A stretch of 64,000 nt of DNA from Basidiobolus meristosporus CBS 931.73 (taxonomy: Eukaryota > Fungi > Basidiobolomycota), in contig MCFE01000036.1 in assembly GCA_002104905.1 (NCBI GenBank), positions 124,001 through 188,000 on the forward strand, read 5' to 3'. Below, piece after piece: positions 17,057 to 60,144 of this stretch (position 1 is the first letter of the stretch; each line of letters starts with the position of its first letter). Position numbers and translations under genes: made by a program. The notes beneath the pieces were generated by a model, which was not told where the DNA came from, did no database searches, and worked only from the letters and a program-made list of their open reading frames with translations.

Positions 17057-17622
17057 ATAGCAAGAGTTGTTGGTTTTGTGAGACTTAGAATTTGGCTGAT
17101 TTTATGATGGTATTCTGCTGGCCTATTCTTAATTTTTCTCTTAGGGTTAGGTTTTATGCATGACTTAGGTGTAGGCAAATATTTACAACATATATTGCAC
17201 GTCACTTTTCCAATATTGGGTGAATATGCTGTAACAGCTCTGAAGATATTGGAAGTGATCAGGAGAACTAGCAACCATCTGGCTTTTCATTCAAGGCTTG
17301 ATAGAATGTATAAGTTGTTGTAAGAGTCTTTGGAGATATTGGAAGTGATTTGGGAGAGCAAGTAGATTATGTTGCTTTCACTTAATGATTTATTAAATGT
17401 AAAAGTAGTATTTAACTTTTACATGGTCTTGGTATAAAGACACCTAGATTGGGTTAAGGAAGGTCCCAAGAGCATTTGTGCAAAGCTTGGGGCTGTTTGG
17501 ACAATTTTGAGAGTTTTCATGCTCTGAGTACCTGATATTTTGGTGAAAATATTCTAAGTAAATCCCAACAAGGAATTTGGTCAGTATTCTCTAGGATTTG
17601 AAGGTAATGATCTAACTAACTA

Positions 17623-18354
17623 GACTTGTTCCGTTGGATAATGCCACATTGAGCCATGAGTGCCAAATAGTGCCATAGTATGCCTGAGAGTCATAGCAGA
17701 CCTAAATGTGGCCACAGAGTGTGACATATAGTTATGCATGTTCATGCAAAGCAGCCCTTATGTTTCACCTACGGTGCAGGAGAAAATCAATTTTTTAACC
17801 TTCTTTTTGGGATCAAAATTGCGCATGACATAAAAGAGCACAGACAGACTGAAGATATGCATCTGGTACATAATACCCATGGCACTCTAAATCTAGCCCC
17901 ACAGGCTTGTAGCATGTCACAAAAATGCATGGCACTATCTTGGTCCACTGGTACTATCTGGCACTATAAGTGCTTTGTATAGGTTCTACTTTAGGGCTAA
18001 TATTTAAATATAGTGCCAGATAGTACCAGTGGACCAAGATAGTGCCATGCATTTTTGTGACATGCTACAAGCCTGTGGGGCTAGATTTAGAGTGCCATGG
18101 GTATTATGTACCAGATGCATATCTTCAGTCTGTCTGTGCTCTTTTACATCATGCACAGTTTTGATCCCAAAAAAAAGGTTAAAGAATTGATTTTCTCCCG
18201 CACCGTAGGTGAAACACAGGGGCTGCTTTGCATGAACATGCATAACTATATGTCACACTCTGTGGCCAAGTTTAGGTCTGCTATGACTCTCAGGCACACT
18301 ATGGCACTATTTGGCACTCATGGCTCAATGTGGCACTATCCAACGGAACAAGTC
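17623..18354. mobile_element. Foldback / long-TIR non-autonomous DNA element (346-bp inverted arms, 40-bp spacer) inserted in the 3' LTR of copia B
   Basis: Arm 17623-17968 is the near-perfect reverse complement of 18009-18354; TA dinucleotide on both sides; repeated GGCACT/AGTGCC motifs; LTR sequence resumes on both sides. Confidence 0.9.
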
Positions 18355-18735
18355 TAATAAGTTAGGTGAATATTTAGGTGGAATTACAAACTCTTACAAC
18401 ACTCCCACTCAGCAATATACTAATACTAACTAGTCCTAATTTTGGCCTAAGATATCCAAATTGTCTGTAGCTAATGGGTTGGTAAATATGTCTGCAATCA
18501 TCTCATCTGAAGGATATTAAAATAAGCTAACTAAGCTATTCTTTATTGATTCATGTTTGGAATGATGTCTAATATCTATGTGCTTAGTTCTAGCATGAAA
18601 AGTTGGATCTCTACCCAATTGTATACATCCTTGATTATCTTGAAATAAAGTAATAGGAGTTTTTTGAAATAGGCCTAAATCTGTAGAAAGCTTTCTTAAC
18701 CACATTGCTTCTTTAGTAGCTTCACAGGCTGCCGT

Positions 18736-19806
18736 TGTGGTGGTGTATAGGTCCAAGGGAGAGATACGTCCAACACTTCTCAAGTGTTTTGTGTGTGGGG
18801 TGTTCACTGGGTGCGATAACCACTGGCAAAAGCTTGCTAGGAATACTTGGGTTCTGTTTCTAATCTAATGTGAAGGGGAATAAAGCCACAAGCTTGTCAA
18901 GGGAAAACTATTGAGCTACAATCCCCAACTTAGTTGGCGTCTTGACAAAAGTATGTGCTGGGTTCAGCGTCCTTTGAGATGACAATGTACTAAAGCTTCC
19001 AAAGTCAAAACAACTGTAAACTCCACCAGCAGGGACTTGATAAGAATGCAGCTGTGGTCAATAGTTACAAAGACAGAAAAGTATCTTTGCCTGTACAAGA
19101 ACAAACTTGGGAAAGAATCAAATATAATAAAAGATACCTACTCTGAGTATTCCTCACAAGTAGTGCCTCCAAGGTCAGTTGGCTGTCAGCGCGGATTCCT
19201 GGGAGTGTCCTGTGGTCTAGGGTTGGAAGTTCAGGTAGCAGCAGGTAGCAGTGATCACACCAATCAACAAGTCGGTATATTGATAAAAGGGATGATGATT
19301 TATTGTTGAGGGATAGCCTCCCTTATATGCTTTTCTCACTGGCGAAGTGATTACTAATCATGGTGTTCCAGAAGGTTCCGGAGATCAATAGAAATCTTAA
19401 TGACATCAGAATGACCTAAGAATGTTCTAAGTAGGTGCTGGAAGGTTCTAAGAGGCACAGCACATCCAACCAATCAGGAATCAGTATTCTGAAACCTGTG
19501 TAACATGGGAATACCATATATGGTATGGAAATGATAGGGATGGTGACATGGGCTGATCATGTGTCACGGGTACTGGCGCAGGTACTTGCCTAATATAGAA
19601 GTACTTATAGCTAGTAATCTTACATAAAGTGAGGGGCAACTTATGCAATAAGGTAAGCAGGTGTGATAGTCAACCGGCTTATGGGATAGTACTGATTGGG
19701 TAAGACAAATGGGATAAAACTAAAATAAGTGTAGTAGTGATATAGGGAAGTAGAAAATAAGGGAATGAGCACATCTGTCAGTGGGTGTCACTGTCACCCC
19801 ACTACA
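18736..19806. mobile_element. Solo LTR-like element, copy 2, inserted in the RNase H coding region of copia B
   Basis: Termini TGTGG...CTACA; exact 4-bp TSD CCGT (18732-18735 and 19807-19810); removing it restores the frame ...ATEAEY-TAACEATKEAMW. Confidence 0.92.
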
Positions 19807-23440: not shown

Positions 23441-24349
23441 TGTTGTAAGAGTCTTGGAGATATTGGAAGTGACTTGGGAGAACAAGTAGATTGTGTGGCT
23501 TTCACTTAATGATTTATTGAATGTAAAAGTAGTATTTATACTTTTACATGGTCTTGGCATAAAAGACACCCAGACTAGATTAAGGAAGGTCCCAAGAGCA
23601 TGTGTGCATAGCTTGGGGCTGCTTGGACAACTTATCTAATTTTCATGTTCTGGGTAAATATTCCAAGTAAATCTCAACAAGGAATTTGGTCAGTATTCTC
23701 TAGGATTTGAAGGTAATGATCTAAGTGACTAAGCTAGGTGAATATTTAGGTGGAATTACAAATTCTTACAACAATAGTCGTACTTCTACTTTTAAATGGT
23801 CCTGACAAAACAAACACATTGAATGTGTTTGGGAAGGTCCCAAGAACATTAGATTTGGAGGCAACAATCCAAATGACTAGGTTAATGTTAGACCATGTCA
23901 GCTGGATTCTCCATCCCCCCTGCCAATTGCAATGATTGTCTTATAGATGAGAGGTACAAATCATGCTTGATGTTGGTATCTGACACTCAAGTTACCCAAA
24001 TATTTACATATGTACGTATCTACTACGTGACCGCCATGGCCTTCAATTGTTAGTGTCATTTGTATCCAATTGGCCCCCTACAATAGGGATCTTGATGGCC
24101 CAGGCGGAACATGATCTGACGTGATAGCCAACCCATATTTAGTTAGCCGCTTGAAATTCATCGCTTTCGTTTGGAATGGTACAAGTATATAGGATGAGAG
24201 CTGCCAGCCGAAAGCTACTATTCTTATGCAGCACTTGCGGTGCATGTGAATGGGTGCATCCTTCGCTTAGCAGAAGATGTATGCCATGAGCAGTAGCGAA
24301 TCCTTAATCTCAAGGTAACCGCTGCTGACGCTCAGGTACTTGCCAATGC

Positions 24350-55026: not shown

Positions 55027-55157
55027 ACTGACCAAACCACTCTTCTCACCCCTGTGTATATTCCTGCCCCACCCTTCCATTCCCTTCATCGTTTTGTTTG
55101 GTAGAATATTGTCGAATATTGTCGAATATTTTTATATATAAATGGATGAAACTGGCT

Positions 55158-56232
55158 TTATTTCACCAGCGGCGGTGGTTGGGATTTGTGGCTTTGCAGT
55201 GTATTCATGGCCTGCCAGAGCGTATCACATATCTTGATTCGTGTGGCTGTGTGCTCCCAATTGGCAGTTTTGGATTCCTCAAGCAGAGTGGACAAGTCGA
55301 TGGGGTCGCCGAACACCACCTTCAGGGTCTGACCCACCCGCGGAATCGGTATCCTCCTACCTTCAGGCATGATGTCGGACATCCCTTTGAAAACAATCAG
55401 CACCTACGACAACGGACGCCTCGGAGTTCTCCTACCTTTGTGCCAGAAAGGAACCACGATCGGGGGTTTCTTGGACTCCATGATAATCCTCCCCACTCCC
55501 CATTTGAAACGAATCAACTTGTCGGTCTGATTGACCTTGGCCTCGGGAAAAATATGAATCTAACTTTGGTTACTCTTCAATCCTGCCTGATACAGTGAAT
55601 CTCTTTGGACCCACCCATTTTCCGTCGTTCATCCGGTCTATCGCAAAATCGACTGCTGGCTGGTATATTCCATCCCCTCTAACGATCGGAACCGTCTGTC
55701 CAAGATAGAAAAACAACGAAAAAGCCCTAGCATCAATTGTGTTTGAAAATCCCCAATTTCAGTCTCCATATTTACCTGGACTTACTCATTGGTGAAGCAG
55801 ATCTCTCGCGCAGCTAGACACCATCTCATGTACTCTCTTTTCCAGAACGCTCTCAAGGGGAATACGTGAAACAACAACGGATCATCAAGTCTGGTCCAGC
55901 AGCAGTAGGCAAACAGTCGGATTAGCCAAAGATGTCTGCCTTCGATCCTTGCGGTCACTTACACTGAGGTGTGGTTTGCAACTATAGCAGGAGAATAGAA
56001 CGATTAAACAAATGCTTTTGTTCGAAATTACAGAGCAAGGGTCCTTACTTGTGATGATTGGTCTGTCTCTATTCGGATCGAAGAGTAGTTTTAGAAAAGG
56101 CTCGAGGTTGTGGACCTCAGTGGTGGTTGTACATTTGATGAACATTTTGCCAAGCAAGCCTACACTAGTCATCACCAGGCTGCTCCCAAGATTCCACAGT
56201 CGGCTGTTCTTCGGGATAACGCGAATACTCAT
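55158..56232 (-). CDS. TAZ1: Tafazzin (monolysocardiolipin transacylase), multi-exon
   Basis: RP.IT..NH.S..DDP acyltransferase motif, IHIFPEAKVNQT, IRFKWGVGR, P.VG..LKVVFGDPI, RIKICD. Confidence 0.9.
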
Positions 56233-56769
56233 GCTATATCAAGGGCTTCTGCTTGGACCAGGAAACTACTTTGCGTCCACCACCGACGAGGTTCACAAGT
56301 TGAATACTATACTTGCCATTGTACTAATTTATTTTGGCAGCCAGACAGATGTGCCTAATCACTGATTTGCTGCCCCTCCGTCCATCTAGCCATCCCCAGC
56401 AAGCGCAATCTACTTTTGGGGATGGAATCAGGAATATTGCTAAATATAATCGTAGGAGAGATCGTACTGAACACACTTATGGAAATTTCGGAATCTATTC
56501 TTGGCTGGCTCTTGTTTATTGTCTAGGAAAACCACGGAAGAGAATAGAGATGTGGCAGGTATAATATGGGGTGGATAAGCAAATGCGGCACACTACAAGC
56601 TATAAGCTAGAAGACCTGATGCGAAGAAGAATGTACACAAATATATGATGGAGAAACTAAGGAAGATTATTAACGTAATATCTATAATAAAGAAGAAACC
56701 ACGGAATCTAATGATGATGCAAAAAGTTCCTCACAGAGCAACGTCCGATCTCTTTGTACATGGCTGAGC

Positions 56770-58560
56770 TCATACTTTGAGCTGCAGTTCGTACTTGCCC
56801 TGCCTGGTCATGTCCAGAGAGATATGCTCCTTCGAGCCGTCGGGTCGTTGCACAGTAATCTAGAAAAAGAAAGATTTCAGCGTGCATGTCCAGGTTAATC
56901 ACTCATGTGCCAAACTGGTTACATACCACTTCTTTGTTCGCGGAAAGAAATTTGGCGTTGTATTTATCCGATTTGAAATCGTTCACCATGATCGCGTCCC
57001 CTTTTTTCAACCATTGGCCATAATACGACAATTTCCCGGACTCTGCGTATACTCGGATGATGCTATTTTCAAAGGGGAGACGACTCACTTTGCTTTGTGC
57101 TTGTGGAGACTGACGTTACTCTATGGTGCATGTGAAATAGTCCGCCTTAACGATGAGTACCTGTTGCAAGCTATTCAAGGGTTAATGACTTCCCCTAAGC
57201 ACACGGTCTTTCAAGAACATACCTGAATAAGGGCCAAATCTTCGCTGATTTCCGCTGGATCAAGGCTGGACACCAAATGTAGGCTAGTTAAGGATACTGG
57301 CGAGATGGCATCTGGATTATTCAAATCTTGACAGCGCAAAAAGGATATTAAACTCTGGCATCATGAGCTTGGCCGGGGTGAGATTTGTTTCATGCAACCG
57401 CGGTATCTTTCGACTTACAGGCTCTGTATCTAGTAGTTGACATTCGATATCAGTATTAGCGACCGCTGACCATGAACAAAGCTGATACTTACAAATCTCC
57501 TCGTCCAATCGCTCGTACTCTTTTTTGAGCCGGTGCTTCTTACTCACAGTGTCTTCTGATAGCGTCGCTTTGAGTGATTTCCTAGCATTCTGCATGTGAG
57601 GTACGATAAATACGTGCTACGCACATCATGCATTTCTCATTGTTTACCTCGAAGTCACAGCGAATCTGATATTCGGTTCCGATATTTATATTGTTAATCG
57701 TGAATAGCTGCGCATTTCGGAATGCATTGGCCATATCGATCACGGCTCTCCTTTTTCTTTCCACCTCTTCTAGCAAAGGTGTCAACTCTGGGTGATTTTC
57801 TAGCAATACAAAGTCGTTGGAATGGTGCTTAGCGAGAATACGATTCATAGAAAAGGAGCCTGTACCATTTTCAACCATCTTTATCTCATCCTCTAGTTCA
57901 TGCAAACGTTCACGGTATATCCTTGGGGCCGGTTAGAATCACTGCTTTCACCGTTTTTAAAGCTTATTATGTTATTTATACCTATCACGAAGTTTTGCAA
58001 ACTCCAACTCAATTTCGCGTAATGAATCCAATGCTTCATGATGCTGGTCTCGGACGACTACCCATTCGATGTATGAGAATAAGCAATTCGAAAAAACAAC
58101 AACTTGACGTGAGTGTTTACTGACCTTGATCTTCATCATCGTGTGTATGGGCCGGGGTCAAATCATCGAGTGTTGTGTCAACAGCGGCAGGAGGATCTAA
58201 TGGCTCTGAATGTTCGGAAGCCTCTGAGCCGTTTTGCTTGCCAGAAGCCGGTGAAGATGGACAAGAAGGCGTAGGTGACAGTAGTGGCGAGTTATTTTTA
58301 CTTTCCGTAGGCGAGTCCGGAGCATTCTCTTGATGATCGAGCTGCTTTTCGCCTTCTTGACTTTTTGCTGGGGTTAAATTCTCTGAGGGGATTTCTGAGG
58401 GTAGAACTGGATTATGTTCAACGCTCTTTGGCTCCTGTGCACAGGTTACGTTGGAAAGCGAGACATCAGAAGAAAGGACACTGGAAAAGGAGCTGGATAG
58501 ATTTGCTGTGGAGTCAGCCTCGGTTTTGGAACTGATTGAGGAAGCAATCTCTAAGGTCAT
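56770..58560 (-). CDS. Sds3/BRMS1-like Sin3-Rpd3L complex subunit, multi-exon, includes an AT-AC intron
   Basis: Disordered N-terminus; EALDSLREIELEFAKLRD..YRERL coiled coil; EHPEL; L...EISEDL..I motif; C-terminal GKL.Y.GQW..KGD.I.V domain. Confidence 0.85.
57279..57348 (-). other. U12-type AT-AC intron, 70 nt
   Basis: 5' ATATCCTTTTT; branch TCCTTAAC ending 8 nt before the terminal AC; removal joins PEF-N-LVSSLDPAEISEDL in frame and deletes an in-frame TAA. Confidence 0.9.
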
Positions 58561-59063
58561 ATGAACGAAGGCTATTGAGATTTAGAAGCAGCGGTATTTT
58601 CCTCGAGAACTTTAGAAGCAGTGCTTGGTGACAGAGAAGTACACGACGATAGAAAAGGAGCAATTTTCTTTGGACAGCGGAAACAACCGACCCACAAAAG
58701 AGAAACTATGGCTAAAAGTAGGCCTAGGAAAAAACGAACAGGACTATTGTGTGTTTACCGCACTATGAAGCCATGGTCAGGAAAACTTGGGAAAAAATAT
58801 ATATATTGATCACGGGGTTGGAATTCAATGGCGGACTGCTCTTTATTCAAAGCATATATTGATTAATTCTTCACCTAAGCTAGTCAAGTTCAAAAGTGCC
58901 AACCAATTGCCCAATCAGTGCATATCAACCTAAACCATATAGGCTACAACTTGATCGACTCGATGTATGATTTGTTTATTGGTGTGGTGGGTGGTGAGTG
59001 GGTGGTGAGTGGTATGTGGTATGTGGTATGTGGCATGTAGCACTGATGTTCAAAAAAATAAGC

Positions 59064-60144
59064 TCAGTACTGCTGATGCTCAGTGCGACTAACGCTTAAG
59101 AAACTCCATAGTGAGTTCAAAAAACTCCTTTGGTTTCTCGGCATGCACTAAGAATGTTGGAAAGCCGGTTAATGGCTGAGTCGGTAAGATAGTAAGATCT
59201 ACTTACCCCAATGTCCTGCATCAAGCTCGGCAAACTGTACGCTTGGGAAGAACTCCTGGATGGCACGATGGTGCTTTTGTTGGACGTAATGCGACTTGCT
59301 ACCAGATACAAACAGGGTAGGCCCTTCGAAGCGCTTTAGCCCTTCTTCAGTTGGAAACTCGCCAAGATCCTCAAGATGGTTCTTGATAATATCCAACGGT
59401 ATACGCCAGGAATAAGCTCCACTGGGATTCTTCCTAAGATTCGTCATCAAAAACATGCGAACCCCATGATCCTAAATACTGCACATCAGTACAATCATTA
59501 CCTCCATCAAGCCCTGTCTTACTCACTGGGATATAACTCATCAATTCATTGTCAGCAGCACTCTGCTTTGTATGCTTGCTCTCTTCAACCTGCTTCATGG
59601 CGCTTATAAAATGGCCGATGTCACCAGAAAGTTTAAGTGAAACTGGTGACATATCAACCACAACTAGTTTTTCAAGCTGCGCAGGTTCGTTTAGACTGAG
59701 AGTCATAGCAACTTTTCCGCCCCTTGGTATACGAAATGAAAACCGTCAATGAAGGTGTGTGTTTCCTTGAGGAAAGTTCGCTTACATTGAATGCCCCATG
59801 AGGTTCACTTTGTCAAGGCCATTCTGCTTTAAAAACTCGGACACATCTTCAGCCATGACTTCATAATTCAAGGGCTCAATATGGGGACTTTCACCATGAT
59901 CTCTCAAATCCAAGGCGTACACATCCGTATTGAGGCTACTGGAGTAGCTTTTTGCAAGTGTCTTCCAGTTTTGTTTAGAACCGAATAGTCCGTGAAGAAT
60001 CACTAAAGGTGTTTTTGCTTGCCCCTTTACTGGGTTAACGGCTTCATATCGGTCATGAACTAATTTAATGCTGGATCTTTGACTACAGAGGCTACCGTGG
60101 AAATTACGCTTGGCGAACAAAGTGAAAGAATTTCGCATGAACAT
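59064..60144 (-). CDS. ABHD11/Imo32-like mitochondrial alpha/beta hydrolase, multi-exon
   Basis: PLVILHGLFGSKQNW, LDLRDHGESPH, nucleophile GHSMGGK (spliced), LVVVDMSP, PTLFV.G..S.YV, GHWVHAEKP. Confidence 0.92.

Follow-up and report, generated by a model that had tools for sequence, protein, structure and literature searches.

A minus-strand gene order of alpha/beta-hydrolase, Sds3-like gene, acyltransferase and Cnd3-like HEAT protein was found at positions 55100-59700 of the window, the 64-kb stretch of Basidiobolus meristosporus DNA that was analysed, and the same gene order was found at locus L001 of B. ranarum (JASJQH010000018.1). The G+C content of the window is about 0.39 in the first 24 kb, about 0.49-0.52 between 24 and 56 kb, and 0.42-0.44 from 56 to 64 kb, with steps at 24001 and 56001. 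The Sds3-like gene is located just past the second step (56001). Elsewhere in the window, a copia-like retroelement fragment was located at 17444-18807 on the minus strand, with an RNase H-like ORF at 18517-18807, and it adjoins two near-identical inverted copies (about 17734-17982 and about 18004-18243). A ATATCCTT...TTCCTTAAC pair at 18517..17444 was considered as an intron and rejected as a chance match inside this fragment.

The window locus corresponds to the locus of K493DRAFT_311424 on contig MCFE01000036.1 of assembly GCA_002104905.1, with 0 mismatches in 5,791 nt. The public protein of this locus (P0006, 408 aa) matched the Pfam family Sds3 (PF08598) with 64.5 bits, above the gathering threshold of 25.4. 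When single exon pieces of the gene were searched, the best Pfam match reached only E=0.03, no meaningful match was obtained in PDB, and no usable match was obtained in the ESM Atlas. The best relatives of P0006 with a solved structure were the Dep1 subunits of the Rpd3L/Sin3 complexes of yeast and fission yeast, and BRMS1 was a weak match. The gene belongs to the Sin3/Rpd3 histone-deacetylase co-repressor subunit family. Its features are listed below.

56770..58560, minus strand: Sds3-like gene, locus K493DRAFT_311424, CDS from ATG to TGA, 10 exons, 408 aa
57349..57429, minus strand: exon 6 (81 nt), ...YTEPVSRKIPRLHETNLTPAKLMMPEF plus the first base of an Asn codon; same length and likewise coding in B. 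ranarum (SISRKTPRIYDTNLTTARSMIPEL) and the paralog P0004
57284..57353, minus strand: annotated GT-AG intron, 70 nt, shifted 5 nt upstream and considered wrong; the model with this intron reproduces P0006 exactly
57279..57348, minus strand: probable U12-type AT-AC intron, 70 nt, phase 1, splitting the codon A|AT (Asn300)
57338..57348, minus strand: 5' splice site ATATCCTTTTT of this intron, an 11-nt exact run common to B. ranarum
57287..57294, minus strand: branch-site motif TCCTTAAC of this intron, 8 nt to the intron 3' end
57279..57280, minus strand: terminal AC of this intron; the B. ranarum intron has AC as well, at L001 4302-4303
57223..57278, minus strand: exon 7 (56 nt), LVSSLDPAEISEDLALIQ, the motif region adjoining the intron; the B. 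ranarum equivalent is MVSSLDQTEINEDLALIQ
57161..57170, minus strand: 10-nt micro-exon CTTGCAACAG, coding for L-A-T and the first base of an Ala codon; also part of the GenBank model

With the AT-AC intron removed, the exons of the Sds3-like gene are 436, 76, 56, 152, 97, 81, 56, 10, 173, and 90 nt long and form an open CDS. The micro-exon at 57161..57170 lies between a 52-nt and a 61-nt intron. Compared with B. ranarum, 9 of its 10 positions are identical and the sole change is synonymous, whereas identity in the two neighbouring introns is only 35-37%. A single intron of 113 nt after ALIQ, which would give SPQAQSK, was rejected, and the version with the 10-nt micro-exon is the conserved one. 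A further intron of 51 nt starting from GTAAGT at 57418, which the preliminary description had put forward as a possible U2 intron just upstream of the AT-AC intron, was refuted. The stretch is coding sequence within exon 6; both B. ranarum and the paralog P0004 conserve its residues (SRK.PR...TNLT...) as coding, and the corresponding place in B. ranarum lacks a GTAAGT.

The 3' portion of the 70-nt intron at 57348..57279 on the minus strand reads ...GTATCCTTAAC TAGCCTAC, and the intron lies between ...GAGTTTA upstream and ATTTGGTG downstream. When the segment was retained, the frame stopped at ...NILFALSRFE*. When it was removed, the frame continued in phase 1 as ...MMPEF-N-LVSSLDPAEISEDLALIQ. 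Both readings had been given in the preliminary description and both were reproduced. The 5' splice site expected for the AT-AC subtype, /ATATCCTT, is matched by ATATCCTTTTT at 57348..57338, and the expected branch site, TCCTTRAY at about 8-20 nt from the 3' end, is matched by TCCTTAAC at 57294..57287, 8 nt from that end. Membership of the AT-AC subtype was judged by a terminal AC, with no polypyrimidine tract needed; the terminal AC was found in both B. meristosporus and B. ranarum, and the last 25 nt contain no pyrimidine run.

The branch-site motif TCCTTAAC occurred 2 times in the 64 kb, which is about the number expected by chance, and the donor motif RTATCCTT occurred 10 times, compared with a shuffle mean of 4.4. 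The full donor and the full branch motif followed by AC or AG 4-18 nt downstream, within 400 nt and on one strand, were found together at a single place in the window, 57348..57279. Based on the shuffle means of the donor and branch motif counts, about 0.01 such composites were estimated to arise by chance per 64-kb window. The remaining RTATCCTT sites of the window were inspected, and none of them had the branch motif in range.

To compare the intron with that of a second species, the B. ranarum ortholog K7432_000922 (P0001) was identified by an exhaustive protein search. At L001 3001-4848, two gene calls joined through an AT-AC intron and the micro-exon form one CDS of 408 aa that is collinear with the window gene. 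The two species agree in the length of each of the ten exons, and each CDS is open. Identity between the two Basidiobolus species was 62-90% for the exons and 35-54% for the introns, indicating that the introns of this gene are essentially saturated. The B. ranarum intron (L001 4232-4303, 72 nt) has a diverged interior and conserved U12 signals. The AT-AC introns of the two species share an exact run of 11 nt from the first base (ATATCCTTTTT) and an exact block of 10 nt (TATCCTTAAC), while in the gene's eight U2 introns the shared runs are limited to 3-7 nt at the 5' end and to 4-6 nt close to the 3' end. The spacer after TCCTTAAC is 8 nt in B. meristosporus and 13 nt in B. ranarum, and both introns end in AC. 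In this comparison with one other species, signals that are kept while the body of the intron has diverged are the pattern expected under selection on the signals.

The public annotations of both species treat this junction differently. The GenBank model of K493DRAFT_311424 contains a U2-type GT-AG intron of 70 nt at 57353..57284 (GTTTAA...CTTAACTAG) with the junction ...CCAGA|CCTACATT... and the protein ...MMPDLHLVSS..., and its difference from the AT-AC model is confined to residues 298-300 (DLH versus EFN). If this model were right, the U12-like motifs would be coincidental. Beyond its exact agreement with the GenBank protein, the model carries the conserved 10-nt micro-exon, which suggests that it was guided by transcripts, and its junction would be real if it had been read from cDNA instead of being forced to GT-AG. 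However, the donor AGA|GTTTAA fits the U2 consensus at the GT only, and the AG is located 4 nt past the sole branch-like sequence. In B. ranarum, the equivalent sites lead to a frameshift and the annotated intron has no in-frame counterpart, and the conserved 11-nt and 10-nt U12 blocks are left without explanation. A transcript-guided predictor that forces GT-AG ends onto an AT-AC junction would be expected to draw just such an intron, equal in length and with each end displaced by 5 nt. We consider it very unlikely that the annotated intron is correct.

The preliminary description had tried AG acceptors from the GTAAGT donor at 57418 and reported that they did not restore the motif; as an account of the GT-AG alternatives this did not hold, since several GT-AG pairs keep the frame in B. 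meristosporus, from the weak GTTTAA donor at 57353. One of them is a longer U2-type intron of 88 nt at 57353..57266 (90 nt in B. ranarum, L001 4227..4316), with the junction ...CCAGA|CCTTGATCC... and the protein ...MMPD|LDPAEISEDL.... Its removal keeps the frame without introducing stops in either of the two species, and in B. ranarum an open frame can come only from this intron or from the AT-AC junction. TTAAC, about 22 nt upstream of the AG, would serve as the U2 branch, at a distance typical for U2 introns. The donors of the longer intron are nevertheless of very low quality (GTTTAA and GTTGAA, each with T at +3), the intron of the public model is 70 nt and not 88 nt, and the conserved ATATCCTTTTT is not explained. 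In addition, LVSS/MVSS would become intronic. In the 13 nt that this model assigns to the intron, 2 of the 3 base differences affect third positions of codons in the coding frame, and four coding residues (VLAS) are present at the corresponding place in the paralog P0004. The longer intron appears even less probable than the annotated one. The least probable reading is retention of the segment in a gene that is truncated or decaying at ...SRFE*, with the downstream exons as a separate gene or a relic. This is how the annotation of B. ranarum draws the locus, where the ortholog is split into K7432_000922 (313 aa, ending inside the AT-AC intron) and a call of 108 aa at L001 4306-4848. Yet conservation within the gene is highest in the downstream exons, which have equal lengths, an open frame and 81-86% identity and carry on the Sds3 architecture, and the signals for in-frame removal of the segment are conserved. 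The protein of K7432_000922 itself reads into the intron as ...MIPELNILFF... and then stops.

The segment at 57348..57279 on the minus strand of the Sds3-like gene is thus very probably a U12-dependent AT-AC intron, and as far as can be judged from the DNA it would be removed from the RNA by the minor spliceosome. The anatomy of the sequence, the restored frame, the selective conservation in a second species and the failure of the annotated alternative there were all observed directly. The AT-AC U12-type intron proposed at 57279-57348 in the preliminary description is upheld by the quality of its motifs, by the restored frame and, above all, by the fact that both U12 signals were selectively conserved in the ortholog from B. 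ranarum. The 5' splice site of a U12-type intron pairs with U11 and then with U6atac, and the branch site pairs with U12. Based on this established knowledge, the U11/U12 di-snRNP would recognise the donor ATATCCTTTTT and the branch site TCCTTAAC jointly, and U6atac would then take the place of U11 at the donor. The 3' site would be the first suitable dinucleotide, an AC about 9 nt past the branch adenosine. Joining of ...GAGTTTA to ATTTGGTG... would give the protein ...MMPEFNLVSSLDPAEISEDL....

Two public gene models are corrected by these results. The K493DRAFT_311424 model has three wrong residues beside the motif that follows the intron, which we take to be the Sin3-interaction motif. In B. 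ranarum, K7432_000922 is a truncated model and the C-terminal half of the protein was called as a separate gene. The expectation that predictors limited to GT-AG would mis-annotate this gene was borne out in the public models of both species, and the locus is a concrete illustration of how censuses of minor introns that are based on annotation miss AT-AC introns.

A paralog of the window gene, K493DRAFT_315728 (P0004, 183 aa, locus L002 3001-3872 on MCFE01000218.1), is also Sds3-like and is 41-44% identical to the window protein. In this paralog, an intron sits immediately upstream of the 11 residues in front of HDL, which corresponds to EDL in the window gene. Unlike the window intron, it is a U2-type GT-AG intron (GTAGGC...TCTAAC...TAG) in phase 0, offset by 2 nt from the homologous position of the AT-AC intron. 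It may have arisen by a U12-to-U2 conversion after duplication. By eye, the locus of K493DRAFT_315728 is more GC-rich than the window gene. A broader idea, which we regard as tentative and somewhat doubtful, is that three Sds3-family paralogs represent different fates of one ancient U12 intron, with the AT-AC intron kept in the window gene and U12-to-U2 conversion by splice-site sliding in K493DRAFT_315728, and that the published counts of minor introns are too low. In Calcarisporiella thermophila (Mucoromycota; P0007, locus L004 1001-2578 on MU987570.1), an intron was absent at the U12 position. The next intron, in phase 0, is shared and follows ...DDLELLR, which corresponds to ...EDLALIQ in the window gene. 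This common intron supports the alignment and indicates that the U12 intron was lost in Calcarisporiella.

The preliminary description had pointed to a minor intron near this motif in animal SUDS3/BRMS1-family genes, which was correct. U12 introns are listed for human SUDS3 (intron 7), BRMS1L and BRMS1 in the supplement of de Wolf et al. 2021 (PMC8280824), as follows.

SUDS3 intron 7: AT-AC, ...CCAG, then ATATCC (PMC8280824)
BRMS1L U12 intron: AT-AC, ...TCAG, then ATATCC (PMC8280824)
BRMS1 U12 intron: GT-AG, ...TCTG, then GTATCC (PMC8280824)

The flanking sequences put all three human introns in phase 1 (P-A-P-A^Q, V-V-S-G^P, and L-V-S-G^P, respectively), and the primer in exon 8 of SUDS3 encodes IMEDLRT, which places the EDL motif just downstream of the SUDS3 intron (PMC8280824). 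SUDS3 intron 7-8 was also used as a U12 lariat in work on RBM41 (PMC11039992). The spacer after the branch motif is 8-11 nt in the human introns and 8 nt in the window intron (PMC8280824). Like the window intron, the introns of human SUDS3, BRMS1L and BRMS1 are minor introns of the Pfam Sds3-like family, are in phase 1 and lie directly upstream of a motif of the ...EI.EDL type, and the AT-AC subtype is common to SUDS3, BRMS1L and the window intron. The human introns are about 1 kb long, whereas the window intron is 70 nt.

When the proteins are aligned on EDL without gaps, the split codon of Basidiobolus lies 11 residues before EDL. The corresponding distance is presumably 12 residues in SUDS3 and 13 in BRMS1 and BRMS1L. 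With 11 residues against 12 or 13, exact identity of the column would need an indel of 1-2 residues, so the window intron is at about the same spot as the human minor introns, to within such an indel. The same phase and the position directly upstream of the same motif argue that the window intron is old, and the minor intron at about this spot in all three human family members suggests that the intron predates the split of fungi and animals.

Minor splicing has been described before in this organism. B. meristosporus is the fungus with the highest published density of minor introns, 249 introns or 0.554% (Larue & Roy 2023, PMC10639083), and a second survey gives 237 minor introns, with U11, U12 and U6atac in the lineage and a low-confidence U4atac in B. 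meristosporus (PMC11347168). Phase 1 is the commonest phase among minor introns (PMC10639083). A search of the 64-kb window with Rfam at gathering thresholds gave no match of any kind, and no minor snRNA among them. The preliminary description had taken the intron to imply a functional U12 spliceosome; a working system in B. meristosporus is indeed published (PMC10639083, PMC11347168), but it is not newly implied by this intron. The window intron agrees with the minor introns catalogued for B. meristosporus in organism, class and consensus (PMC10639083, PMC11347168). Both catalogues classify annotated introns, and the window intron is annotated as a shifted GT-AG intron, so it most likely lies outside both of them. 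As a representative of a known class, the intron is real but unremarkable, and it leaves the knowledge of where minor splicing is present in fungi unchanged. Minor splicing in B. meristosporus is already known, and only the mis-drawn gene models and the location at about the spot of the human minor introns are new. Together with the introns of SUDS3, BRMS1L and BRMS1, the window intron provides one more well-supported candidate among the minor introns common to fungi and animals.
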